A DNA stretch of 64,000 nucleotides from Lepidodermella squamata (Eukaryota > Animalia > Gastrotricha), in the NCBI GenBank assembly GCA_047495785.1, contig JBLDXI010000010.1:1984001-2048000 (forward strand), written 5' to 3'. This document shows positions 39,135 to 64,000 of the stretch, one piece after another. The number at the start of each line of letters is the position of its first letter. The first letter of the stretch is position 1. The notes beneath the pieces were generated by a model. It had not been told where the DNA came from, ran no database searches, and saw only the letters and a list, made by a program, of their open reading frames with translations. Made by a program: the position numbers and the translations under genes.

Positions 39135-41730
39135 GGGTCTAAATAAGTGCACCACCTAAAATGAGGTTCCAGCACTAAATTTGTGAGTGCGTCCACCTAA
39201 AATGCAAACAGGCGGCACTAAATCTTCGCGCCACCTAAATAATGAATCCAGCACTAAATAATCGGTGTGGCACTAAATAATAGCTTAGGCGCGCCGCCGA
39301 GCAATATTTAAGGCGGCTCAGTCATCATATCATCAACTGCATCATCATCATCTCGTCATTATTATTTCTTGGTTATTATTCTGAAATGGAGGAAGTGCCC
39401 CTCTTAATCATCGATACGGCCGAAAATCTGCCGCCGCCGCAACCAGCCAGTCGTCGACGCGGCAAGGAGCAGGTCTGGACGTGTGTTCAACAGTTTGAGG
39501 ACGAGGAGGCTGCCGACGATCACGTCGCGGACACCGGCACAGCTTGGTGGTGGAATAACGGCCGCTCGTACCTCACCAACCGCGGCATGATGCACTACTT
39601 CGACTGCTCACACCCTGGTTGCGAAAGTAAGCTCCGAAAGGTTATTCATGCCGATTCGCTGTACGTGTCGCTGGAAGAAAACGACGTCAACCATGATCAT
39701 TCGCAACCGAAGAAAGAAAAACAACGCGGTTTGCCCCCAGCAACTCGGCGCATCATCGATAAGCTTTTCCTTGACGGTAAAACAAAGCCTCTCTCGATTT
39801 TAATGGCGTTCAGGGAAAAAGGAATTCCAGAGCCGAAGGATTCGCAACTCTCGAGTTACTTGGCCACCCTTCGGAAGAAACACCACGGCCCGACGAAGGT
39901 CAGCATCGCCGCGCTACGCCATTTTGCTGAGGAGCACTCCAAGGAGTCTACAACGTCAAGGGATGACCCTTTCGTAGTGTCCTCCTACTTCAACTATGAT
40001 CAAATTGATGAGAAGAAAAGCGTGTGTCGAATCGCACTAACGACGCGCCGGCTCAGTAAATACGCCAAGAAGGTCGGCGCACACGACCTTCACATCGACG
40101 CGACGTACAAGACCAACGTCAACGGTTACCCGGTCATCTTGGTTGGCTTCAGTGACAAGGTTCGTATTGCTGTCGATTCTTATCAATTTTTTTTAATTTT
40201 TTACAATTTCCTCATTAGGACCGACATTTTCACCCGATTATGGTGGCGGTGTGCACCGGCGAGGCTGAGGACGACTACGAGTTCGTGCTGAGAGCGGTCA
40301 AAGACCACTTGTCCGAATGGCTTCCGGCGCTCGCCGTCTCAGACGCTGCTAAGGCGATTAAGAGGGCGATCCGAGCAGTGTTTGCCGAAGTGAAGCACGC
40401 CATCTGCTGGTTTCATGTCACGAAAAATCTCAAGCAAGAGTATCTACCAACGATCAAAGACCCCAAGCTGCGCGATCAATTCAAGGACGACGTCTACTCC
40501 ATGCAACTGTGCTGGTCGCCTGCTGTGTTCCAGGTCGTGTCTCAGTTGTTTGTCAGCAAATGGGAGGCGGTGCCGGAAGCGGCGGCGTGTTTGGCGGCTT
40601 TCAAGAAGCAGTACCTGGAAAAGAACAACACGTGGTACCAAGGCTACGCTATCGGCTCAATGGTCAACAACAACGGCCAAGAAGGCAAGAACGGCCGCAT
40701 CAAGACCGATTACACCTTTCGGAGTCGTCTGCCCGTCATGCAGCTGCTTGAAGTTGCGAAAAAGATGCTCGGTCGCTGGTCGTGGGAGCGGAACAAGAAG
40801 TGCGTCAACTACAAGAAGTTCTTCACAGCGCCAACAATCAAGGACGAAGTTTGGGAAAAGGCGCGTGTCTGGGCTCGAGATGTTGGCACTGGTCTTCGAT
40901 CGCAGCCGAGCGGCAATGGAACTCTGTACGTGTGGACGAAGCAGTCAGCTTTGGCAGAAGGTGTTGCTGCTACTGCTGCTGCTGCCGCTGTCCCGAAGGG
41001 ACCCCCGCCAGCGAAGCGAGCCCGTGGTCGACCGCCGAAGTCGAATCCACCGAAGGACGAGCTGTCTCAAGCTGTCTGGGAAGCTCTCTTGGCAAGAAAC
41101 AAGCCTCTAGACAAAGATGTTGGCCCTCAGGTGGCTGAAATATTCTCGAAATTCTCGTGGCCTGATTTCGACTCGTTCTCCAAGTTCAATAAGCGTTTCG
41201 GGTGAGAATTCTTTCAAGTTTTTATGGCGTATTAATAGGTTATTTGTATTAATAGGATGGTTTTGATCGACGGTGAGCAGCAAGTGTGCAATTGCTGGAA
41301 TTTTCTCAAAACATACCACTGTTACCACGTCCTTGGTATACAGATGCGCCTGGGCGACGTTTCTTTCCCGGTCGAACTTGCCGAGCAGCTACCGCTTGGG
41401 CCTAAAGCTAAGCGAGGCCGCAAACGAAAAGCTCAACCCGCCCTGGTGGTCCAAGACTGAGCTATTTATTTTTAATTGTTTAATGAGCCATTCATCCGTA
41501 GCGAGTCGGATTGCTCAGCTGTAAAAGAAAGCAATGATTTCGTAATTTTGTAAACTAATAAATGATGATCTCTTGATGGTATATTCTCAGTTCTAATTAA
41601 AGCAAAATTAGGTGGTGGCTACGCATTTTTAGTGCTGGAGTTGTTGATTTAGTCGCAAATAGGATTAGTGCGAGTGACTTTCAAATTTAGTGCTGGAACC
41701 TTATTTTTAGTAGGTGCAGTTGGCACACCC
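39135..41730 (+). mobile_element. Full-length Mutator-like (MULE) DNA transposon
   Basis: Perfect 9-bp TSD GTAGGAAAT at 39126-39134 and 41731-41739; GGGT...ACCC termini; imperfect TIRs with repeated GCACTAAA motifs. Confidence 0.93.
39386..41460 (+). CDS. MULE transposase, 3 exons, apparently intact
   Basis: Exons 39386-40159, 40219-41201 and 41256-41460 splice in frame. LHIDATYK (D), VSDAAKAI (D), CWFH, NNGQEGKN (E), N-terminal C-x4-C...HxH finger, C-terminal SWIM CNC...CYH, AT-hook-like RGRPP. Confidence 0.92.
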
Positions 41731-51966: not shown

Positions 51967-54900
51967 TCACAAAACGTAGCGAACGAATGGCATGGCCATC
52001 ATCGAGCCATCATCGCCGACACACGCCATGTCGAGGCGGATTGATTTCTTGTTACCCACCAAAGCCGAAATCTTGGGATGATGCGTCTCTATCAGTTGGC
52101 GAATGGATAAATCCAACTGCTGCTGACTCTTCTCCTGTGACATCCGCGCCTTGTTGTAGATTACGTAATTGCCAATCGCAACCATACCAACTACGACGCC
52201 ATCCCGATTGAGTCTCTTCAGAATCTCACCCAGTGTAACTCCGGGATTTTCAAAGTTGAAACGGGTCCAAATCGTCCAACTCGGAGCTTTGGGAGCATAG
52301 GGTGGTTTCAACGTGGCATCACGAGGATTGCTCATAATCACAACAGGTTTGCTCAGGTCGAAATGGGTGTTTCTGAACTTGGATAACTGCGAATGGCCCT
52401 AGACGAATTTGATAAGTTCCAAGCAAACCAGACCAGCTACAATCGCTGTTGTAGTTGCAATAGCTGGCGTTATCTGTAACAACTTCAATCAACAATGAAT
52501 GACAAAAAAGATCGAACGAACCTTTCCAGCGATAAGTTTACTCTTCTGCCGATTTGCAGGTTCGATGAAGTAGTTCTCAGCCCGGCAGTTTGAAGCTGCG
52601 ACAATGAAGTCGAGGTGAAAATTGGAATCGTCATCCTTCTCGAATTCAATCGGGGTAATCGAACTGCCATCGATTTCAGCCTGCTCTGGAAGCTTCGCTT
52701 GTAACTCCGCGACCTTCGCCTTCATTTGCTCAGCTCGCTCTTCTTTCAAAATTTGCAAATCACGGTCATTTTCGGCAATCAAGGAATTGCCACGAGGTTC
52801 GAATTTCAGTTCAACCTTAGAAGCGATGGCTTGAATTTTCGACTTGTCCCGAATCTGGGTGATACCGAACAAGCTAGCGTAAAGATTGGCTGCTGAACTG
52901 ACGAAATCGACATGAAGCTCCTGTAAGAAAAGGTTCGAGAAACCTTAGAACTAGAGATTCAAACTCACATTGTCCAAATCAAAGTTCAAAGCTCGCGGGA
53001 ATCTTTTGGCATTGTCCCAAAATGGCTGCCCATCGGATCCAAGTTGATCCTGGGGGAACCTTTCGGTCAACTCAGCAATTTCCGAGTGAAATAACTCTTG
53101 AAATTTCGAGCAAGCCCAGCTGACGCACTGTTCGAAGTTGGTTGGTCGATTTTCTGCGGCGAGAAACTGCACCAAGCTCTCGACGGCTTCCAATCGTTCA
53201 ACTTGCTGGAGATTCGCCAGGAATTGCTCGCCCTCTGCCGCGTATCTTTTGACGTATTGAGCTGGCGAGACGAACAAATCGTGAAATTGTTCACGGGCCC
53301 AGTGAAGCGTATGCTCGATGGCGTTTGGGAAGCTTTTGATCGTACACTGGGCGTAGGACGTTTCGTCAGAAGCCGACAGGCCAGTCGAATAAGGCTCGGT
53401 CAAAGATTGCAATATTACCTAAAGAAAAAGGTTCCAGAACTTGATTTGAGGTTCAAAATCGAACCTAGAAAATCGAGTACTAAAACGCTTCAATTTAGCG
53501 CTACAAAGTTCCGAAGTTCCAAATTAGGATATATCGAAAAAGAAACCTTTGTGGATCCGGTTTCGCCCTTCGTCGCAGATTCGAACATTGGCTTCAAATG
53601 GTAGATGCAACGCTTGTCCAAGTACTCCCTAGCCTGGAGATTATCCAACGCGTTGACAACCGCATCCAAAACGTCGAAAAAATCTTCGTCGTAGATATCT
53701 TCGGTTTCGGGCCCAACTTTGTTCAAATGATACTCGATATTCAAATCGCGGTTAATTGCCTTGACCGCAGCAGCGGCAACCTTCGATTTAGGCTCTTTCA
53801 AATCGTTTTGCCGGAATAGGAATTGGCGGTTGAGATTCGATCGTTCGATGACGTCCATGTCGGTTGTAAGGAGCTTGCCAGCTTTCGAACAAGCCACGCC
53901 CATCATCGCAAAGTTTTTGAGTAACTCGCAGCCGATTGCGCCGGTGCCAACAACAAACAATTTGAGCTTTTCAAGCTTCTCCTGAAATTGCTGGCCGAAA
54001 ATTGCGATTTGGCTGGCGTAGCGACTAGGTTCAGATGGGAAGTCGATGAGTTTTTGCGTTTCAGGTAGACATTCCAAGGCGTCAAAGTACATGAATTGAT
54101 GTAGCGGGACAAATTTCCCAGATACAGCTTTGAAGACTTCTTGAGCCGCGAATCCTCCGATAACAGCGTTCATCGGGCACAAGTTACCGGTTGCTTGAAG
54201 AGCGAAGGCCTTAGCGATTTGCTTTTCGCTTTCTTTTTCGAAACGTTCAGAGAATCTTCGAGCAAATTCTTCGTTTCTAGCAGTTGGCGAGTCGCCGAAT
54301 TCGCCGAGCAAGCAGAAGGCGCGGTGGATCGTAGATTCCCGGCCCATTTTTCCGAAATCGGTGATTAGGAACCTAGGTTCAGCTACGGCTTCAGCTAGTG
54401 GCTTGAATGACATAGATTTGCTGGTTTTGACCTGCAAATAGAAAATTCATACAGGACCGACAATCCAACAATCCAAATTACCTGGGTAACTATGCATTTA
54501 TTGCTTGGTGGCATCTCGCAATCGGCCTCAATAGAGAAAATATCAGCGGTTATCGAAGCAGAGATGCGAAAAGGTCCCCAAGTTCGCCGATCCCCTTCCG
54601 CCCCAGAAACCGATCGATCTAGGGCGAATGTTACCAGATTGCCCTGAGCAAAACCCCTCGAACCCGTTTGCTCGACCAGCTTGACCAAATGAGGCGATGA
54701 CGGGTCGCTGCTACGGTTGATTGAACCGACAAGGCGAGACAGAGGCTCGCCAGCTGTTGGATCGATAACTTCGAATCTGTCGCCGAAATCGCAGAAGAGC
54801 TGGCCGAATAAACCGCGAGTTGACGCTAGAATGAACTTGACCCCGTTCAAGTGACACCATTTGCCAATTTCCTTTGTTTTTTCGTCAATCACGTGATCGC

Positions 54901-55371
54901 AGAGAACCACAACCTGAGCAAGTATAAATGTCCAGCAATTAAATTTCTATAAATATTGGAAATTTACGTGGAATTTGGAGACGAAATCCACGGTAAGGCT
55001 CTCGTCAGCCGCTTCCACGCGAACATAAGGGTTCAGCTCAGCAAATCGATTCCTGCTCGCTTCGGCTCGATTTTTGTTCAGGTCATTAGCGGTCAAATAG
55101 AACTTGAAAGATGCGAAATAAAATTTTGAAATAAAATTTATTAGATTTTTACCTGGGTTCCAAGATCCGAAATTTGCGTCGCTTTTGTGTCGTGAAGCGT
55201 GACAGAGCGAACGCCGCCTAAAATGACGTTTTTCGCGATTTCGGCGCCCAAGCCATTGAGTCCGCTGATGAGAACATCCGCGCCAGCCATTTTACGCATC
55301 GTTGACTCGCCGAGAGTGTAAAGCTGTCGCGAATACAAAGACTCGTCGATTGCGCTATTATTCTTAGTCAT
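51967..55371 (-). CDS. Divergent UBA1-type ubiquitin-like activating enzyme E1, 7 exons, about 1000 aa
   Basis: [42 protein letters not shown], catalytic [18 protein letters not shown] (Cys at 53344-53346), [25 protein letters not shown] and a C-terminal UFD. Exons splice in frame. Confidence 0.95.
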
Positions 55372-55677
55372 AGCCGCCGAGATTTACAAGAAAATTCGCA
55401 AATTCTGTCTAAAATTTGAAAATTCATATGATTTACTCGTGAGTAATGGAGATGGAGAGATGAATCGGCAGTTCTGAAATCTGAAATATCAGGTTGTAGG
55501 ATTTCAGAAAGGTCGAAGCCAAGGTCAATGAGAGTAATAAAATCCAGAAAAAAAACGAAATAGGAAAACTACCGAATCATTTATCGACTCTGTTTTTATG
55601 TTTTGGTAGCAAAATTATAAAATCTATAGCTTCGTAATTTAAAAAATTCAAAAATTTCAAAAAAATGTGCAGAGAAT

Positions 55678-56286
55678 ATCTTTTAGCGGAACCAAATTTG
55701 ACTGTTGCGGAATCTAATTTTAGATGGGCAATAGGTCGCTTTTCAAATATTTCCATAAAATATTTAAGGCAAGATAAATGAAGAAAGCGTCTTATAGATA
55801 TAATTACACGCTGATGAATAGGTTCTATGCTAGATAATTGAGCAGACAAAAAGTGAGCAACGAAAATTGAGCAAGGGCTTTTTAGCAACGATATGAGAGC
55901 AAACGAAATTAGAGCAAATTTAATAATTAATTGTAGCTCTTATTTGGCAGACCGTCATAACAGCAAATACCCAAAACAGCAAACGCGACAGAACAGCAGA
56001 AACACGATGCATCTTTTACATAGTAAGTTTTCGCTGTTTTGTCGCGAAATAAAAAATTTGCTGTTTTGTCGCATTTGCTGTTCTGCGAAGCTGCTGTTTT
56101 GTCGCCGTTTTGTCGCGGCATTATTTATTGTAAACACAATTTGTTCTAAAGTCGTTTTGCTCTAATTTCGTTTGCTCTTATATCGCTGCTCAAAAGCCCT
56201 TGCTCTATTTTCGTTGCTCAATAAGCATAGAACCTTGAAAGTTTCAAAAAGTGAAAATTCCAAATTTTGGCTCCGCTAAAAGATAG
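55678..56286. mobile_element. MITE with ATCTTTTAGCGGAACCAAA termini, containing a nested GGTTCTATG-family MITE (55821-56234) that itself carries an insertion
   Basis: Inverted ends; the inner element shares TIR and GAGCAA subrepeats with 34477/38999. Confidence 0.7.
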
Positions 56287-56923
56287 GCATTCTGGAAAAA
56301 CATTTAAACTTGAAAACATTTAAATTTTAAAATTCGAATTAAATTCTTTTGAATTTTGAATCGAAAATTCGAAATTATTTAATCGATTTAAATGAAAGTC
56401 GTCGATTTGTCACGTCTTTCCCAATACTATTTACAATTGGCCTCTCTGTGACAATTTTAGGCTTCAGAAGATGCCGATCTGAAACTCCGGGTAAAATAAT
56501 TTGTACTCTAGTTGACGGTCTAAAAGGTATAGGGGAACTGAAATAACAAGGTGCCCAATTATCGATAAAAAAGAAAATGTCTATAATTTTCGAAACATTG
56601 GAAAGATTTAGCACTGGAACCTTGTGCCAATAATCCAAACTAAAATTGAATAAAAATTATTCAATATTTCCGCTCTTCAATGCGAATTTTTTGCAAATCA
56701 GAATCATTATTATCGAAAAAAGGGAACACGTGCGCTAAGTGTTACGATTCAACTTTCACGCGGCCTCATCGCCAAGCACGTGCGACGTTGGCCGAGCCGT
56801 TTCAAATCTACTAAATAATATAAAAGTCAATAACGAATCTTGAATTCACTGTAAATCGATATATTCATTTCACGCAAAGATTTGATAGATCAATCAACAT
56901 TGTGTTCTAATCGAAAATAAATC

Positions 56924-57184
56924 ATGTCCGACCGCTTCGACATCACGTTCAACATATTCGGCCACGGTGAGCTGTACAGGTTGAACGTATCGCCTAAAGA
57001 CACGGTGCGTGACGTTATTCGAATGCTGCGATCAGTGGCTGGCGAGCAAGCCATTACGGACAGCGTCAACATTATGCATGGCAATGAACAGCTCGATGAA
57101 AATATGACGCTGGCTCAGTACGGCATCCAACCGCGCCACACCATCCACGTTATTCCGCGCATTCAAGGCGGCCGTCACGCTTGA
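56924..57184 (+). CDS. Novel ubiquitin-like protein precursor, 86 aa, ending GG-RHA
   Basis: Beta-grasp pattern aligns with ubiquitin: LNVSPKDTV, QLDENMTLAQYGIQ, TIHVIPRIQGG. TATA-like TATAAAA near 56819; intronless. Confidence 0.9.
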   Translation: MSDRFDITFNIFGHGELYRLNVSPKDTVRDVIRMLRSVAGEQAITDSVNIMHGNEQLDENMTLAQYGIQPRHTIHVIPRIQGGRHA

Positions 57185-58411
57185 ACGAACTCGCCGCGCG
57201 GTTTCGTCTCGCTGTCAAATTAAAACGGCTGCCTTTTTGTAAAAAAACCGAAATAATTGATAAACTTAAAATTCAAAATTTATTCAGTGGTTTTTTCGAA
57301 AATAAAAACTGTGACCAATTTTCCTACTTTGCTATAAATTAGAGTCGAACCACTATTTTTTCCAATTTGTTTTGAAACGCAAATCTGTTCATGCGGCGTG
57401 TCCTGTACCGTTTACTCATTTTATTATTTTTTTTTAGGGAATTTAAACTAATTTTTGAAATTAATCACACTGGGGACTCCACGATTTCACCGAAGAAATT
57501 TGTTCGGTAATTTTCGGTTTTTACTTGGTTGGACCAAATTTCTTCTTATTTTTTAATCCCATTCATAAGAGACATTTTTGATTACTGTTCTTATGACATT
57601 TTAGATTTTTCTATGATTTTTCTTGCCTTGAGATATTCAGTAAAATCGGAAATAATTAGTTCGCAATTTAGCCGCTAATTAACCGATATTTACTCGGGCA
57701 TTTAGGACCCTGGAACCTCCTATTCAGCCTAACATTTTCCATTGAAGCTTCCAATTACCGAAAAATGAAATTCAATGCGATAAATGCCACATTTTTGGTA
57801 AAAAGTATAAAAGGCGGGCTTTCTTGAAAATTATCGATATTGAAAAATGGCAATTATTCGTCCGATGTGACCTGAGTTGGTTGCCTCTCTTGCCAGAAGC
57901 TTCACGGTTTTTTGAGAGATGGTCCTTAAAATGGATCGAATTCACCGATTCCTGAAAAAAACATTGCACGACTATCTGAAACTCAAGGTTCTGTAATATT
58001 GGCACAAATCAATCGAAAATTCCGCAAAATCATTTCGGATCGCGGTTATAGCGGGACCTTCTCCGTAGGCGCGTTATTGACCTGATTCCCGGGCAAGAAA
58101 AATTTCCTATAAAGCCTTTTCACAGGATGGTGCCATGCAACCTCAAATCCTGTAAAATGCCAATTTCAAAACTGAGAATTTTTAATAAATTAGAGGACAG
58201 CATTATCATCATCCATTTTTTTTGATCTCGAACCGAATTGTAACGAAAATTTGAGAAATATTTCCCCCAGGCAAGATCTATATCGATTGGCAAAAATCGC
58301 TTCAAAAATTACTCATGTTTTATGAAAAAGTGCTGGGCAAAATTATTACACATAAGTACGTCATTATAATTATCCGAATTACGACTATAATTTTTATTTC
58401 CTAAATCGGAA

Positions 58412-58650
58412 TATCTTTTAGCGAAACCAAATATGCTTTTTGCGGAACCAAACTCGAAATATGCTAAAAGTCATTTTTTGAATATTTCTAAGACTTTTAG
58501 GCTGAGCATGAATTCTGAATTGAACACTGCACCTTATGGAGAATTTTGCGCTGAATTTTCTAGAATTATTGTGGCCAATCTTCGATTCAGCTAGAAAAGT
58601 CTAAAATGTGGTTCCGCTCACCGTAAATTTGGTTCCGCTAACAAGAGGAT
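58412..58650. mobile_element. MITE of the GCGGAACCAAA family (related copies at about 10420-10620 and 11850-12030)
   Basis: Inverted GCGGAACCAAA / TTTGGTTCCGCT repeats; internal GAATTCTGAATTGAACACT shared with the SOS intron copy near 11890. Confidence 0.65.
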
Positions 58651-58951
58651 CCTTTCCTGAATTCCATTCGGTTTTTTTTCATTTTTTCAAATTCCTCTTC
58701 GATTTCGCCGATTATTCTATATTTTTCAAGCGATTTTAATCACGCCATGTTTTCCTTTACACCGTGTCATGGCATAAAAAAAATGTGATTTAATCTGTTG
58801 ACTCATCTTGACATCTTGACAATCGCGTGTCATCATTATGGCGCCACTTGGCAAGCAAACGGTTCTTCAAGCACGCGCCTTCTTTCATTTTCGATTTTTC
58901 CACAACAGGTTCATTCAGTTTTCGCCTTACATCTTAGAAATTTTTCTCGCA

Positions 58952-59747
58952 ATGGCTTGTAATTTAACCGGCGCTCTTCGACTGCAACACGATTTGAACA
59001 AGTAAATACAACAATTTTAACACAAATTATTGTATAATCGAATTGTTTCCAATTTTAGGGTGCTTACGAATCCGCACTCATGCGGAACTGCGGCGCCGGT
59101 CGATGACAATTTATTCCAGTGGCGAGGCTTCATCTTTGGGCCGGCTAAATCGCCCTATGCTATGGGCATTTTTCGCGTTCAACTCGATTTCCCGCTAAAC
59201 TACCCTGCCTCGCCGCCTATCGTCAAGTTTCTCGACAACATGTTCCACCCTAATAGTAATAATTATCTTCATAGCATTTTTGAAAAAATTCCTAGACTTT
59301 TTTATAGATATTTTGAATAAATTTTAGATTTTTATATAAATTGGTAATTTCAAAAATTTAATTTTTTTAATTTTTCTATATTTTTTTATTCTTAATTTTA
59401 ATTTTAGTGAAATTTTGAAAATGTTTCAATAATTTATTAGAGAATAAATAAATTAAAAAAATTCAACTTTTTCGAACTGTTTTAATTTTTTTCAATGCTC
59501 GCCCGATTCTTCTACCTTAGTTAATTCAAGCGGTGGCGTTTGCGTCAGTCACTTGAAGCAAGGAAATTGGGATCCTAGCATGGATGTCGCCGCTATTTTG
59601 GAGTGTCTAGCTTCACTTTTGCTGAACCCGAATCCAAATAGCCACATTAATCGCGACGCTGCCGACTTGCTGCTGAAAAATCCCGCCGAGTACGAATCTC
59701 GCTGCCGCGAAATCGCCCGTCAAACCAGCCAACGGCCAAGGAGCTAA
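58952..59747 (+). CDS. Ubiquitin-conjugating enzyme E2, divergent RAD6/UBE2D-like, 3 exons
   Basis: Exons 58952-59001, 59059-59255 and 59521-59747. W..IFGPAKSPY..GIF, FPLNYPASPP, MFHPNINSSGGVCVSHL (HPN and catalytic Cys), SLLLNPNPNS. Confidence 0.93.
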
Positions 59748-59848
59748 ACTTGAACTTTGAACGATTGAGGAAAATACATGATTATGCAAGCTACTGTGAA
59801 TTTCTTCACGCATTTTAGGTACTTTTAAAATCGTTTTTACTGATCGAA

Positions 59849-62638
59849 ATGGGAAAAGACAAGAAGAAGAGCAAGAAGACCAAGGCCGGTGCGGAGGCAG
59901 CGCCTGATTCCAAGCTACAACCGGCTCCGATTGAAGAAAATCCGGCTAATAACTTGCCAGAAACTTTGGTTGCTTTGTCCAATGCGAAAGATGGAGAAAC
60001 TCCGAATCAGCCATCTTTGGTTCCAGGTTCTGAGCTCCCAGTTGAGAGCAAACCCGAAGCTCTTTGCCAAGTGGAACAAATGGTGGTTAAAGAGAATCCT
60101 GTTAATCACGAACTTGAAAGTTCGGCAGCCATGACTGACGCGATACCGTCTTCAGTTACCGAAGCTCTAGCACAAGGCGAGAGCAAGGCCGAAGCTCCTC
60201 GCCAAATCAAAGTTCATGAACCTGCTTTTCATGAAAGCATCGACTCACCCGAAAATTCAGCAACTATATCCTCTGCGAAAGATGAGAAAAAGTCACTTGA
60301 ACCTTGTTTTGTTGGCGATGCTGAGATCAAATATTCAGCTGTTGGCCAAGCCGAACCAATGGAACAAGAAGTAGAGAGCGCTCCGATAAGTTTCCAAGCT
60401 GAGAATCCGATCCAAGTTGGGGAGAACGTCGAAGCTCCTATTCACGAAGAGAACGTCGAAGCTCCTGTTCACGAATCTGCAACCACCAGTGAGCTGAATT
60501 CGGAAGTCGAAAAGGTTCCAGACGCAACTGTTTCGGAAAATGTTAGCACACGCGATTCTACGGTTGAGGAATCCCCGCAGGAACTTGGACAGGAACCTTC
60601 AGAGATTGTAAGCCAGCCTCGATTCGGCCAGTTGTCACAATCGGTTTACCACAATTCGCCCAAAGCTGTTCAAGATTCCGAGCCGAAGACGGAAGCTGGA
60701 AAGCAATCTGGCACTCCTTCGTCCCTTCACAGTAAAAAATCCGCGAAGTCCGCCTTTCAACCGAAAGATAACTCAGACCAATCGCCAGCTGAGCTGCCAA
60801 GCCCTGTTAACAAGAAACCGCACTTGGATATCGGCAAATCGCAGATGGATATCGAAAACCTCGCGAGCCCTGATCAGAAGAGCCACAAGCATCATCGCAA
60901 GGGCAGGAAGAACCAAGCGTCCGCGCCCCCGCACGATCCTGATGATGTCGAGTGGGCTGATGATAGCAGGAGCAAGTCTTCGTCGAGGAACGATAAGGCA
61001 ACCCGTCGCAAGGCGAACCAACGATCGAGCGACGACGAACCGCCTGCCAAGGCGAAGCTACCGGCTGCGTCCAATCAGGAAGCTGAGGAAAGGTTCAAGC
61101 AAAAGCTTGCCGAGTTTCAATACCGCGGCATGGCGATCAAGCCTGCTATCCGGCTTCAGAACGTTGGCAATACCGTAAGTTTTTTCTTACTTAATTTCTT
61201 AATTTAATTCATAGATTTCAGTGCTACGTCAACAGCGCTCTTCAGGCAATCCTGCCGATTGAAGAGTTGTATCGATACGTCACAAGCCATCCTTCTTCCC
61301 AACCTATAACTCGAACCGTTACCAAGTTCGTGAAGCTGGCCTATGAAACCCCAGGATCTTACCACGATCCAACCGATATCCGATCGGCAGTTTCGTCTCG
61401 CGTACGAACCTTCCAGATTGGCCGGCAAGATGACGCCATGAATTTTCTGGCGTTGGTTCTTCAAAAACTGCATGCAGAGTGGAACGAAATCGGCGAGCAG
61501 CCTCCTTTTCAAATCATTCAAGCTGTTGGCCAGGAATCTTGCCGCGACGTTGCCCAAAGTAAGCTAAATTTACATATGAAACTTCGTAACAAATTCTTCG
61601 AAAAAACAACAGAACATTGGCGTTACGATTCGAGTTGCCACATGTCTGAGATAACTCGGCTGTTGCGGTTCCAAGAAATCACGATCGCTAAATGCTCCAA
61701 GTGTCGCAAAGTCATTCCAGCATATTCGGCGTTTCAGTGCTTCAACATTTTGATTCTCGCGTTCAAAGAAGAAGATCGCAAACGGTCGCTCACGTTGAAC
61801 GACCTGCTCGAGCAACACTTTGCTGAGAAGGCTCGAAATTTCAAGGATGACCCTTGCCCGTTCTGCTATGAAAATGCTTTCAACCTGGAGGAGCGTGGTA
61901 TTGCTTCGTGCCCGCCGTATCTCATCGTTCAGCTGGCCAGGATTGAAGAGAATCTGATGACCGGGCGTCGGTCGAAGATCGATAGCCACGTCACTTATCC
62001 GAAGAGGTAGGATGATTGACCTTACGAAGTTGCTTTTTAATCTTTTTCCTAGGCTTGAGATTCCCGATAGCTCCACGAATCTTGCTGCTTACGAGCTCAT
62101 TTCCGTTATCAATCACTCCGGCTCACTGGAACACGGCCATTACTTCACCTATTCGAAGCGTGGCGAAGATTGGTTCGTCTTCAACGATTCCAGCATCGAA
62201 AAGCTGACGAGTAGCAATCACTTCTCAAACAACTCGAACGCGTGCCTGTTTGTCTATCGAAAAGTTGACCAGCAAATGGTTGAATCCAAGCCAGAACTCA
62301 CCGCAGATCTCGACCAGCCTGGCATTGAACCTCGCGCAAAATTTGACGAACCTATCACTGTTGAACAGCCTGTTTTACCCTCGCCAAGTGAGCCACCTTC
62401 TTTTTCTGATTATCGCCCTCTTAGCTACGGGTCTATCGAAGATGAGACCAACGAACCTGCGAATCATGATTGCAGCATTAACGCTCGATTACTCAACGAA
62501 GACGCCGAGAAGAAGCGACGAATCTCAAAAAAGGCTACGCTGATAGCTGTTGGCTTGGTTACGACCATTGGCTGCGGTGTTTTGCTGTGGTACTTCTTAT
62601 CTCGCTCTGACAACAAAGTTCCTGCGCAAAGCCCTTAA
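59849..62638 (+). CDS. USP-family deubiquitinase with acidic disordered N-terminus and C-terminal transmembrane anchor, 3 exons
   Basis: Exons 59849-61174, 61222-62006 and 62053-62638. Cys box LQNVGNT|CYVNSALQ, QDDAMNFL, His box HSGSLEHGHY...WFVFNDS; terminal hydrophobic LIAVGLVTTIGCGVLLWYFL. Confidence 0.92.
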
Positions 62639-62718
62639 AGAACTGATTCTCAAAATAAAGGACATTCACGTTTCGAATTTAAGAATTAAGCTTTGAATTT
62701 CCATAGGGTTTACATAGA

Positions 62719-63897
62719 ATGGCGGCTTACGTAATACCATGTGACAAGTTCGAGCCTGTATCGTATTCTGATTCTGATTTGTGCCATTTATGCGATTGTG
62801 AAATGTACTATCATACTGGGGGTAAGATTTACAGATTGAATCCTAAAATACGTTTTCCTTGTCTGAAATCTGAAACAGGGTTGTTTGGTAAATGTACGTG
62901 TTGCAACTGCCAGAAATATCTGCCTAGAAGCTTCAATTGCAAGAACTGTAATTTAATACTCGGCAATCATTCAAAGGAAGCAGGTGGGTGTTTCCAACTT
63001 TTTCCGATTTGAATTACTTTTGTATTGTTACAGTCATATCTTTCACGGCCGAGATGGACGGCTCGAATAAGCAGGTCTCAATCGCTCAACCCCAAGTTTG
63101 CTCTCGACCTGAGCCAGATGATATGGAATGGGACCGTTACGAGACGAAAGTTGTCAAGAAACGCCCTCCTGTTAAACCACCTGGTAAAAATTTGCCAGTC
63201 ACGTCCGGCCAAGTACTTGCGAACAATCAGAATGCTAAGGCGCTTGCAAAGCGCGGAAACCCAACCAAAGCTCCGAAGCCCTATGTCGAGGTGAAGCCGC
63301 CGCAAGAAGTCATTCATCTTGGTGTAACTGGCCTCAGGAATGTTGAGAACAACGTAGGGATCAACTGGCTTTTAATTGTCAAAGTTTTGCTGTCAGTGCT
63401 ATCTTAACAGCTTGTTGCAATGTCTAAGCCACGCGGAGGGTTTCAAACGCATATGCCTGGCAGAGTGTACCAAGAAGCGCGGCCCGCTGTTCAGCTCGAT
63501 CGCTAAGACCATTGAGGCTCTATGGTCTCAGGAAAAGGTGACTGATTCGTCGCTAGTGAAGCGGCAACTGGCGCGAATCGACAATAGATTCTCGACGAAT
63601 GAACACCACGATTTGCTCGATGTCATGATGGTCTTACTTCGACAGCTTCATGCCGAATTGAACGAGGGCGATACGGAAGCGTACCGAATTATCAATGAAA
63701 CCGACCTTCGGCGGATGTGTACAGGTGAGGAAAATAGAAGATTCGAGGCGCATTTTGTCGAAGGTTTAAGCTGCTATGTCGATCTTGAATTGCTGACCCT
63801 TACCAGTCGTCTGAGCGAAATTTCCGACGCAGACAATGTTTTTATAGCGTGGAATATTTTTCGATGCCCTTTTAGCTATTTCTCAATCCCCTCTTGA
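62719..63897 (+). CDS. Second USP deubiquitinase, probably with an N-terminal Cys/His Zn-binding module; 3' part unresolved or beyond the window
   Basis: Introns 62822-62878, 62984-63033 and 63354-63396 join the Cys-rich ORF in frame to GLRNVENN|CYLNSLLQCL...EHHDLLDVM. His box not in the window. Confidence 0.75.
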
Positions 63898-64000
63898 TGA
63901 AGCTATGCGTGAAAATATCGAAAAAATTGAAAAAGGGCTGAGTTATGGGAACAATTTGTGGTGCCACTACTTTTGGTGAGCGTGGGTGGTTTGCCACCCG

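Follow-up and report, generated by a model that had tools for sequence, protein, structure and literature searches.

Five adjoining genes in the gastrotrich Lepidodermella squamata encode an E1 activating enzyme, a ubiquitin-like protein (Ubl), an E2 conjugating enzyme and two members of the ubiquitin-specific protease (USP) family, which raises the question of whether they make up a protein modification pathway of their own or are paralogues that serve ubiquitin. We addressed this question in a window of 64,000 nucleotides, the whole stretch of DNA that was analysed (C10:1984001-2048000, where C10 is contig JBLDXI010000010.1 of the 121 Mb, 151-contig assembly GCA_047495785.1), with Pfam scans of the open reading frames (ORFs) from 51.9 to 64 kb, and exon structures were fixed by reading the splice junctions by hand. 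Positions are those of the window, and those called extended run on past its end. We consider, with moderate confidence, that the five genes form a lineage-restricted module for Ubl conjugation and deconjugation, present in two paralogous copies and built from duplicated host genes, in which the E1 has been rewired to a new modifier and a private E2. Pfam and the junction readings together gave the following five genes:

51967..55371, minus strand: the cluster E1, UBA1-type, 1000 codons in seven exons (55371-55153, 55102-54992, 54913-54482, 54431-53547, 53418-52969, 52920-52522, 52473-51967), from Pfam and splice junctions
56924..57184, plus strand: the Ubl, a single exon of 86 amino acids, Pfam ubiquitin/Rad60-SLD
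58952..59747, plus strand: the E2, 157 amino acids in three exons (58952-59001, 59059-59255, 59521-59747), Pfam UQ_con on two of them
59849..62638, plus strand: the first protease, USPa, 898 amino acids in three exons (59849-61174, 61222-62006, 62053-62638), Pfam UCH
63054..64000, plus strand: the 5' part of the second protease, USPb, with exons at 63054-63353 and from 63397 to about 63724 (the Cys box), Pfam UCH at 63376-63897

This arrangement agrees with an earlier note on the same DNA, which had described an E1, Ubl, E2 and two USPs with no unrelated gene between them and with the E1 head-to-head with the other four; the Pfam matches bear out the genes, and the ORF list of the window holds no sizeable unrelated ORF between them. 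The E1 and Ubl genes are divergent, with start codons 1.55 kb apart. If the genome has about 15,000 genes, with about 6 UBA1-like and about 35-40 USP loci among them, a chance run of E1-Ubl-E2-USP-USP has a probability that we roughly estimate at about 1e-8, so that on this estimate chance clustering of the five genes is negligible. Direct reading of the sequence also upheld the claim that the catalytic Cys is intact in the E1, the E2 and both USPs. The end that had been given for the cluster, 63897, was wrong, as USPb continues about 2.1 kb past the end of the window.

The cluster E1 has two ThiF repeats and an SCCH domain with a catalytic Cys, as canonical multidomain E1s do. Pfam matches on its exons run ThiF, E1_4HB, ThiF, two UBA_E1_SCCH (4.9e-38 and 3.3e-27) and E1_UFD (3e-10); the ATP/Asp motifs GxGxxGCE and NALDN are present, and the catalytic Cys lies in AQ-C-TIKSFP. 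In the PDB, its best match was human UBA1 (323 bits over 315 amino acids), ahead of UBA7 (259 bits) and UBA6 (243 bits). The whole cassette occurs again on contig C48, at about 358.9-369.5 kb, in the same order and orientation and with 59-91% amino acid identity piecewise, and the E1 of that copy is an intact gene of 1000 codons. The E1 in the window had been taken for full-length, and this was not borne out, as a stop codon cuts off the entire E2-docking UFD together with the final helix of the adenylation domain, leaving the UFD past the stop in C10 and in frame in C48:

52399..52401, minus strand: in-frame TAG in E1 exon 7, at codon 857 of 1000, read as AAA TTC GTC TAG GGC CAT

The earlier note would have been refuted if this E1 were the only UBA1 of the genome, which it is not: the canonical pathway has genes of its own, and the cassette is separate from them. 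The SCCH model, run against the whole genome, found three tandem UBA1 genes on contig C54 (3100800-3116000), which match human UBA1 better than the cluster E1 does (674 bits over 544 amino acids), together with a fragment on contig C31 and distant matches on C1 and C74. C19 carries canonical polyubiquitin arrays, and C17, C2 and C135 carry ubiquitin-fusion genes. Only C10 and C48 have the Ubl type, and the E2 and USPa types are likewise confined to two places each. The expansion of the housekeeping E1 is itself unusual: the first two C54 genes (a and b) are 63% identical, the third (c) is probably similar, and the tandem UBA1a-UBA1b pair is kept in an uncultured relative represented by the ENA metagenome assemblies ERZ23486787 and ERZ23486764. 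The C19 arrays (1152931-1154301, at least six repeats, and 1431937-1433280, at least seven repeats) encode a ubiquitin repeat that reads TIDSVKQKIQ at the place where animal ubiquitin reads TIENVKAKIQ.

A maximum-likelihood tree of 83 E1 sequences placed the two cluster E1s on a long branch (1.02 changes per column) as sister to the three C54 UBA1s and three ENA metagenome proteins, with a Shimodaira-Hasegawa approximate likelihood ratio test (SH-aLRT) support of 99, and placed this group inside the animal clade (SH-aLRT 95). The cluster E1 is thus an old, fast-evolving duplicate of the lineage's own UBA1, rather than a UBA6, a UBA7 or a foreign gene, with the long branch lowering the certainty of its exact position. 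The proposal that the cassette was built from duplicated ubiquitin components is supported by this placement of the E1 among the host UBA1s within Metazoa, and by an E2 that is nearest to RAD6 and UBC4; the USPs are orphans. We searched public collections without this genome's own records, so that absence elsewhere is weak evidence, and found no orthologue of the cluster E1 among 1.84 billion representatives (best match about 48% over a whole exon, at most 56% over part of one, those checked being ordinary UBA1s) or among the exon-sized ORFs of 5.8 billion proteins (best about 53%). No relative of the Ubl was found by word-indexed search, by exact look-up or in 2.9 million viral contigs.

The same tree bears on the possibility that a giant virus or mobile element brought the cassette in and that it is not derived from the host. 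Long ORFs 8.5-11 kb past the window end, which had been called giant-virus-like RNA-repair and primase genes (a putative label), would suit such an origin, as would a MULE transposase at 39.4-41.2 kb and the much greater divergence of the two copies at 34-65 kb than in the flanks. However, the E1 groups with the host UBA1s inside Metazoa, the E1, the E2 and both USPs contain short GT-AG introns like those of their neighbours, the neighbours are ordinary animal genes, and the 2.9 million viral contigs held no relative of the Ubl. We therefore regard this origin as highly improbable.

If the E1 is a duplicate of the host UBA1, the next question is in which of its parts it has changed. Of the 138 columns that are at least 90% conserved in 61 UBA1-type sequences, eight are changed in the C10 copy and seven in the C48 copy, six of these being common to both, and the host UBA1s change one to three. 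Among the changed positions is a motif that corresponds to part of the pocket for Arg72 of ubiquitin:

53547..53570, minus strand, at the end of exon 4: Arg72-pocket motif G-S-T-K-V instead of the UBA1 consensus G-N-(V/T)-Q-V, from the conserved-column test

The substitutions are N574→S and Q576→K in yeast Uba1 numbering, and both copies carry them. In yeast Uba1 this pocket consists of Asn574, Gln576, Tyr586 and Asp591 (PMC3731359), so that two of its four residues are replaced, and in the NEDD8 E1 (NAE) the residue matching Gln576 is Arg190, which rejects ubiquitin (PMC3731359; see also PMC12355090). Identity to crayfish UBA1, measured domain by domain for the cluster E1 and for the first of the host's C54 genes (C54a), differed among the parts of the enzyme:

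IAD: cluster E1 54%, host UBA1 55%
N-terminal part of the AAD: cluster E1 60%, host UBA1 63%
SCCH: cluster E1 44%, host UBA1 44%
FCCH: cluster E1 26%, host UBA1 47%
Crossover loop: cluster E1 43%, host UBA1 61%
UFD: cluster E1 23%, host UBA1 40%

In the two cluster E1s the UFD carries a net charge of +6 and +2, where canonical UBA1s range from -1 to -9, and the acidic stretch that reads ESGEDVEV in the latter is DDGSMMAM in the cluster UFD. The Arg72 pocket and the ordinary FCCH and UFD conservation of a UBA1 orthologue are accordingly absent from the cluster E1, and the three C54 genes are better candidates for that role. The divergence of the cluster E1 lies chiefly in its modules for recognition of the modifier and the E2, with the catalytic modules normally conserved, and this pattern fits a change of partner better than it fits decay or a redundant ubiquitin E1.

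Alternatively, the genes may be paralogues that have specialised within the ordinary ubiquitin pathway. The E1 would then still charge ubiquitin, for one E2, tissue or compartment in particular, the USPs would be ubiquitin proteases, the Ubl would not be a substrate of this E1 (being, for example, not conjugated or handled separately) and the clustering would reflect co-expression. UBA6 sets a precedent, as a second E1 that serves ubiquitin with an E2 of its own (PMC12355090). The triplication of the canonical UBA1 in this lineage, with a tandem pair kept in the metagenomic relative, the 130 of 138 conserved UBA1 columns that are kept, and a Gln-to-Lys change not evidently tailored to a Ubl that keeps Arg72 as ubiquitin does, are all compatible with this explanation. 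Set against it are the ubiquitin-contacting FCCH and crossover loop, which are among the most diverged parts of the E1 and far better conserved in the host UBA1, the presence of a basic residue where Arg190 of NAE rejects the Arg72 of ubiquitin, and the conjugation-ready Ubl, with its GG and short tail, that lies next to the E1 in both cassettes. On balance we consider it unlikely that the genes are such paralogues. Because the Ubl keeps an Arg72 equivalent, the Gln-to-Lys change alone does not explain a preference of the E1 for its neighbouring Ubl.

The Ubl itself shares 31-33% of its residues with ubiquitin, and 33% with the ubiquitin that this genome encodes. An AlphaFold2 model of it (mean predicted local distance difference test score, pLDDT, of 86) has the ββαββ order, with the last four residues disordered, and the best Foldseek matches to the model were ubiquitin chains, with a template modelling (TM) score of about 0.8 and a root-mean-square deviation of 1.3-2.0 Å. 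The predicted β-grasp fold and a C-terminal GG with a short propeptide are those of a type I modifier. In both copies the tail reads H-V-(I/V)-P-R-I-Q-G-G, followed by RHA in C10 and SRHA in C48, so that the GG is kept while the residues past it vary, and this combination of a GG and a short tail looks like the precursor form typical of conjugated modifiers. The near-invariant 76 amino acids, seven Lys and LRLRGG tail of ubiquitin are not found in this protein, which has one Lys in C10 and two in C48 and in which a three-residue deletion shortens the β1-β2 (Leu8) loop. Since Lys residues are so few and the Leu8 loop is truncated, long homotypic chains and normal recognition through a Leu8-Ile44 patch seem unlikely.

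The E2 reads HPN-I-NSSGGV-C-VSHL over the junction of exons 2 and 3, with the HPN ending exon 2 and the catalytic Cys in exon 3, and thus has the HPN and the Cys about eight residues on that mark a UBC-fold E2. In the PDB, the N-terminal half of this single-domain UBC protein is closest to fission-yeast Ubc4 and its C-terminal half to RAD6, UBE2A and UBC-1, with only 48-61 bits each, and the next-best E2 loci in the genome are 44-49% identical to the cluster E2. The first helix of an E2 normally offers basic residues to the UFD surface; helix 1 of the cluster E2 reads ACNLTGALRLQHDLNK and is poor in such residues. Neither the high identity nor the basic N-terminal helix of a RAD6/UBE2A orthologue was found in it. 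Within the second E2 intron, positions 59355-59392 are a low-complexity, AT-rich part and not conserved coding sequence.

Both proteases have the Cys box and the His box of the USP family. An intron interrupts the Cys box of USPa, GNT|CYVNSALQ, and its His box is GSLEHGHYFTY. The N-terminal 440 or so amino acids, which have no Pfam match and are rich in Ser, Pro, Glu and Lys, are taken to be disordered, and a C-terminal hydrophobic stretch was read by eye as a putative transmembrane tail anchor. The Cys box of USPb, ENN|CYLNSLLQ, is inside the window, the exon with its His box (a UCH match) spans 65.4-66.0 kb, and in extended coordinates the gene stops at about 66103. The intron that follows the Cys-box exon is about 1.7 kb long in C10 (63730 to extended 65420) and about 180 nt in C48, which implies an insertion of about 1.5 kb. 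Matches of both USPs to the PDB are weak (about 35 bits, to USP15, USP28, USP8 and USP18), and the two are orphans.

Comparison of the two copies indicates how the cassette has been maintained. They lie in a block that is colinear and inverted over all 84 kb compared, and that is probably at least 400 kb long, as position 20 kb of C48 matches position 2.40 Mb of C10 (one further matching point). A segmental duplication is more likely than a leftover haplotype contig; we considered the latter for C48 and found it unlikely, since neither C48 at 900 kb nor C10 at 1.70 Mb has a partner. In blastn alignments of C10 with C48 the flanks are 91-95% identical, whereas the 31 kb from 34 to 65 kb, which hold the cassette, are 73-88% identical or unalignable. 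Synonymous divergence (dS) is about 0.3 in the cassette, compared with 0.07-0.33 in the flanks, and differs less than the blastn identities do; we therefore report the 34-65 kb island as an observation and not as evidence of balancing selection. Nonsynonymous divergence (dN) is 0.06-0.17 in the cassette, compared with 0.006-0.04 in most neighbours. The resulting dN/dS ratios are 0.22 for the E1, 0.14 for the E2, 0.30 for USPa, 0.40 for USPb and 0.64 for the Ubl.

These values bear on whether the cassette is a redundant, decaying duplicate, of which one or both copies, or at least that on C10, are becoming pseudogenes with no present function. The nonsense codon in the C10 E1 would be expected of such a duplicate, as would the raised dN of the cassette, the high ratio of the Ubl, the disruption, different in the two copies, of a Cys-rich ORF upstream of USPb, and the broken remains of a third E1 copy on C31. 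This last, at C31:1389000-1389600, takes in the beginning of exon 7 as well as the intron before it and part of exon 6; it has about 84% amino acid identity to the cluster E1 and an 8-nt deletion, loses homology soon after, and is thus a pseudogene fragment. However, apart from the single TAG, both copies have open frames through about 2,300 codons of the five genes and retain every catalytic motif, and the dN/dS of the four enzymes is 0.14-0.40. The site of the TAG is CAG in the C48 E1 and in the C31 fragment, as in the UBA1 consensus, and past it the frame stays open in C10; with C31 as the outgroup, 14 private changes fall in C10 and 13 in C48 over 157 nt. Since these numbers are similar, no extra decay is seen in C10, and the stop would appear to be either recent or a base-calling error.

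Transcript-like coverage of the Ubl in two datasets also argues against decay. Three datasets hold the region, and in each we counted sampled words of a 3-kb stretch covering the Ubl and E2. The dataset of 2024 (X2), which is probably the source assembly, holds 91% of these words. A dataset of 2015 (X1), which we guess to be RNA, and one of 2014 with 22 million letters (X3) hold only about 30% of the 3-kb stretch but 91% of the Ubl coding words, a pattern that is expected of transcript-derived contigs and is suggestive only. Taking these points together, we judge it quite improbable that the cassette is a duplicate in decay.

The reading that we favour, of a lineage-restricted module rewired to a new modifier, leads to a model of how the parts could work together. 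One or other of the USPs would remove the residues past the GG from the Ubl precursor of 86 amino acids. The UBA1-derived E1, with normal chemistry and a remodelled FCCH, crossover loop and UFD, would then adenylate the Ubl and form a thioester with it. From there the Ubl would be transferred to the RAD6-like E2 encoded next to it, at an interface between the remodelled UFD, which is less acidic, and an E2 helix 1 that is less basic. The E2 would modify its targets either without an E3 or with an unlinked one, and the USPs would reverse the modification; should the C-terminal stretch of USPa be a tail anchor, this protease would probably act at a membrane. With one or two Lys, the Ubl would probably be mainly a mono-modifier. 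If the base call is right, the C10 copy would either lean on the intact E1 of C48 or be beginning to decay.

Several observations weigh against this module. The premature TAG in the E1 of the window means that the C10 cassette may be incomplete when taken alone. No orthologous cassette was found in other organisms in the public collections, so that its conservation rests on two paralogous copies in one genome, and as the lineage has also triplicated its ordinary UBA1, extra E1 genes need not imply a new modifier. The dN/dS of the Ubl, over 85 codons, is probably too near 1 to exclude neutrality. The Ubl keeps an Arg at the position of Arg72 of ubiquitin while the E1 pocket gains a Lys, and the match between the two is not obvious. 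Finally, no RING, HECT or RBR gene lies in the window, in which the earlier note had likewise recognised no E3, or in the next 20 kb past 64 kb, so that there is no linked E3.

Among known systems, that of ISG15 (with UBA7, UBE2L6 and USP18) resembles the cluster in having a dedicated UBA1-derived E1, its own E2, a modifier precursor with residues past the GG, a USP-family protease and a fast-evolving modifier. However, ISG15 consists of two Ubl domains and ends in LRLRGG, and its system's genes are dispersed, whereas only one domain makes up the cluster Ubl, with PRIQGG as its tail. As the cluster E1 scores higher against UBA1 and branches with the host UBA1s, it is not a UBA7, and no interferon-type regulation of the cluster is known; neither the two tandem Ubl domains nor the UBA7-clade E1 of the ISG15 system was found. 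The system of UBA6, FAT10 and UBE2Z is similar to the cluster in its second UBA1-like E1, its own E2 and a modifier, other than ubiquitin, that lacks a patch of the Ile44 type. The cluster E1 scores lowest against UBA6, and the genes of the UBA6 system are not clustered, whereas those of the cluster are linked. UBA6 is found only in chordates and echinoderms, and FAT10 has two domains (PMC12355090).

The canonical pathway of UBA1, ubiquitin and RAD6 or UBC4 is the evident evolutionary source of the cluster, with which it shares the IAD, FCCH, 4HB, AAD, SCCH and UFD, the catalytic motifs, the HPN and Cys of the E2 and the USP fold. The differences are that the Ubl is far from identical to ubiquitin and lacks its seven Lys and its Leu8 loop, that the FCCH, crossover loop and UFD of the E1 and helix 1 of the E2 are remodelled, and that the canonical genes are kept separately. 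Archaeal (Caldiarchaeum) and bacterial operons are alike in linking a modifier, an E1, an E2 and a protease, and the short gaps between plus-strand genes here (101 and 80 nt) add to this likeness. Bacterial ubiquitin-like operons consist of compact, intron-less genes and encode a small single-repeat E1-like protein and a JAB-type protease. For Caldiarchaeum the literature describes, similarly, small single-repeat E1-like proteins without FCCH or SCCH and proteases of the JAB/Rpn11 type (PMC5654768). Unlike these prokaryotic operons, or virus-borne ones, the cluster has parts that are all of the UBA1, UBC and USP types, enzyme genes with spliceosomal introns and an E1 of animal descent, and it does not belong with them.

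We found no description of a comparable animal cassette in the literature. Dedicated ubiquitin branches with a UBA1-derived E1 are, to our knowledge, few, and those of ISG15 with UBA7 and FAT10 with UBA6 are deuterostome inventions whose genes are dispersed. If the module is what we propose, a branch of this kind would have arisen independently, with a new modifier and with a UBA1-derived E1, an E2 and proteases of its own, and it would offer a natural experiment in the rewiring of E1–Ubl and E1–E2 specificity, with changes in the FCCH, crossover loop and UFD and with catalysis left alone. Tight linkage of all the parts, which is unusual for an animal, eases cloning and reconstitution, and the tail of the Ubl predicts a distinctive Lys-ε-IQGG tryptic remnant by which conjugation would be detectable by mass spectrometry. 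A more ambitious form of the proposal is that the genes are a complete private Ubl system, in which a new modifier is served by a UBA1-derived E1 and an E2 that meet through a charge-remodelled interface and by two dedicated USPs, one of them possibly membrane-anchored. Its genes would be linked and possibly co-transcribed. The rapid divergence of its two copies within a divergence hot-spot would fit a part in immunity or genetic conflict, and the system would be an independently arisen invertebrate counterpart of ISG15. We regard this proposal, taken as a whole, as possible though doubtful.

The layout of the locus has some bearing on possible co-expression. Two features lie between the genes:

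55372..56923, no strand: the intergenic region between E1 and Ubl, from the gene coordinates
62719..63012, plus strand: a Cys-rich ORF of 97 amino acids with several CxxC-like pairs, directly upstream of USPb and 80 nt past the USPa stop

The first of these may be a promoter region shared by E1 and Ubl; blastn did not align it to its C48 counterpart. The gap from the E2 stop to the USPa ATG is 101 nt (59748-59848), and the next gap, from the USPa stop to the start of the Cys-rich ORF ahead of USPb, is 80 nt (62639-62718). Both carry an AG acceptor-like site 12-30 nt ahead of the next ATG, and the second also holds AAATAAA, so that the layout of E2, USPa and USPb resembles an operon. A search for the nematode SL1 spliced leader gave no match, with a control that was uninformative. 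The Cys-rich ORF has no Pfam match. In a three-frame comparison of the two copies it was open in C10 and broken by a frameshift and a stop in C48, and C48 reads straight into USPb where the C10 ORF changes frame. The ORF may be a decaying zinc-finger N-terminus or reflect an unresolved exon structure.

The neighbouring genes, by Pfam, are ordinary animal genes, which include actins, RasGEF, RhoGEF, TRM6, NRDE-2, membralin and a 2-oxoacid dehydrogenase component. A MULE/Mutator transposase domain (Pfam 3.7e-09) is found in two overlapping long ORFs at 39386-41205 on the plus strand, for which blastn found no counterpart at the matching place in C48. ORFs at 42.4-43.6 kb have no Pfam match and look by eye like C-type lectin/EGF proteins. 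A long intron-less ORF and the ORF that follows it, at extended 72507-75603 (8.5-11.6 kb past the window), are present in both blocks with dN/dS of 0.03 and 0.13, which indicates strong constraint, and two ordinary-looking host genes lie between them and the cassette; the putative RNA-repair enzyme and primase labels mentioned above belong to these two ORFs. Directly downstream of USPb, ORFs resemble a family C G-protein-coupled receptor, a neprilysin-type peptidase and arrestin-domain proteins, as judged by eye from their translations.

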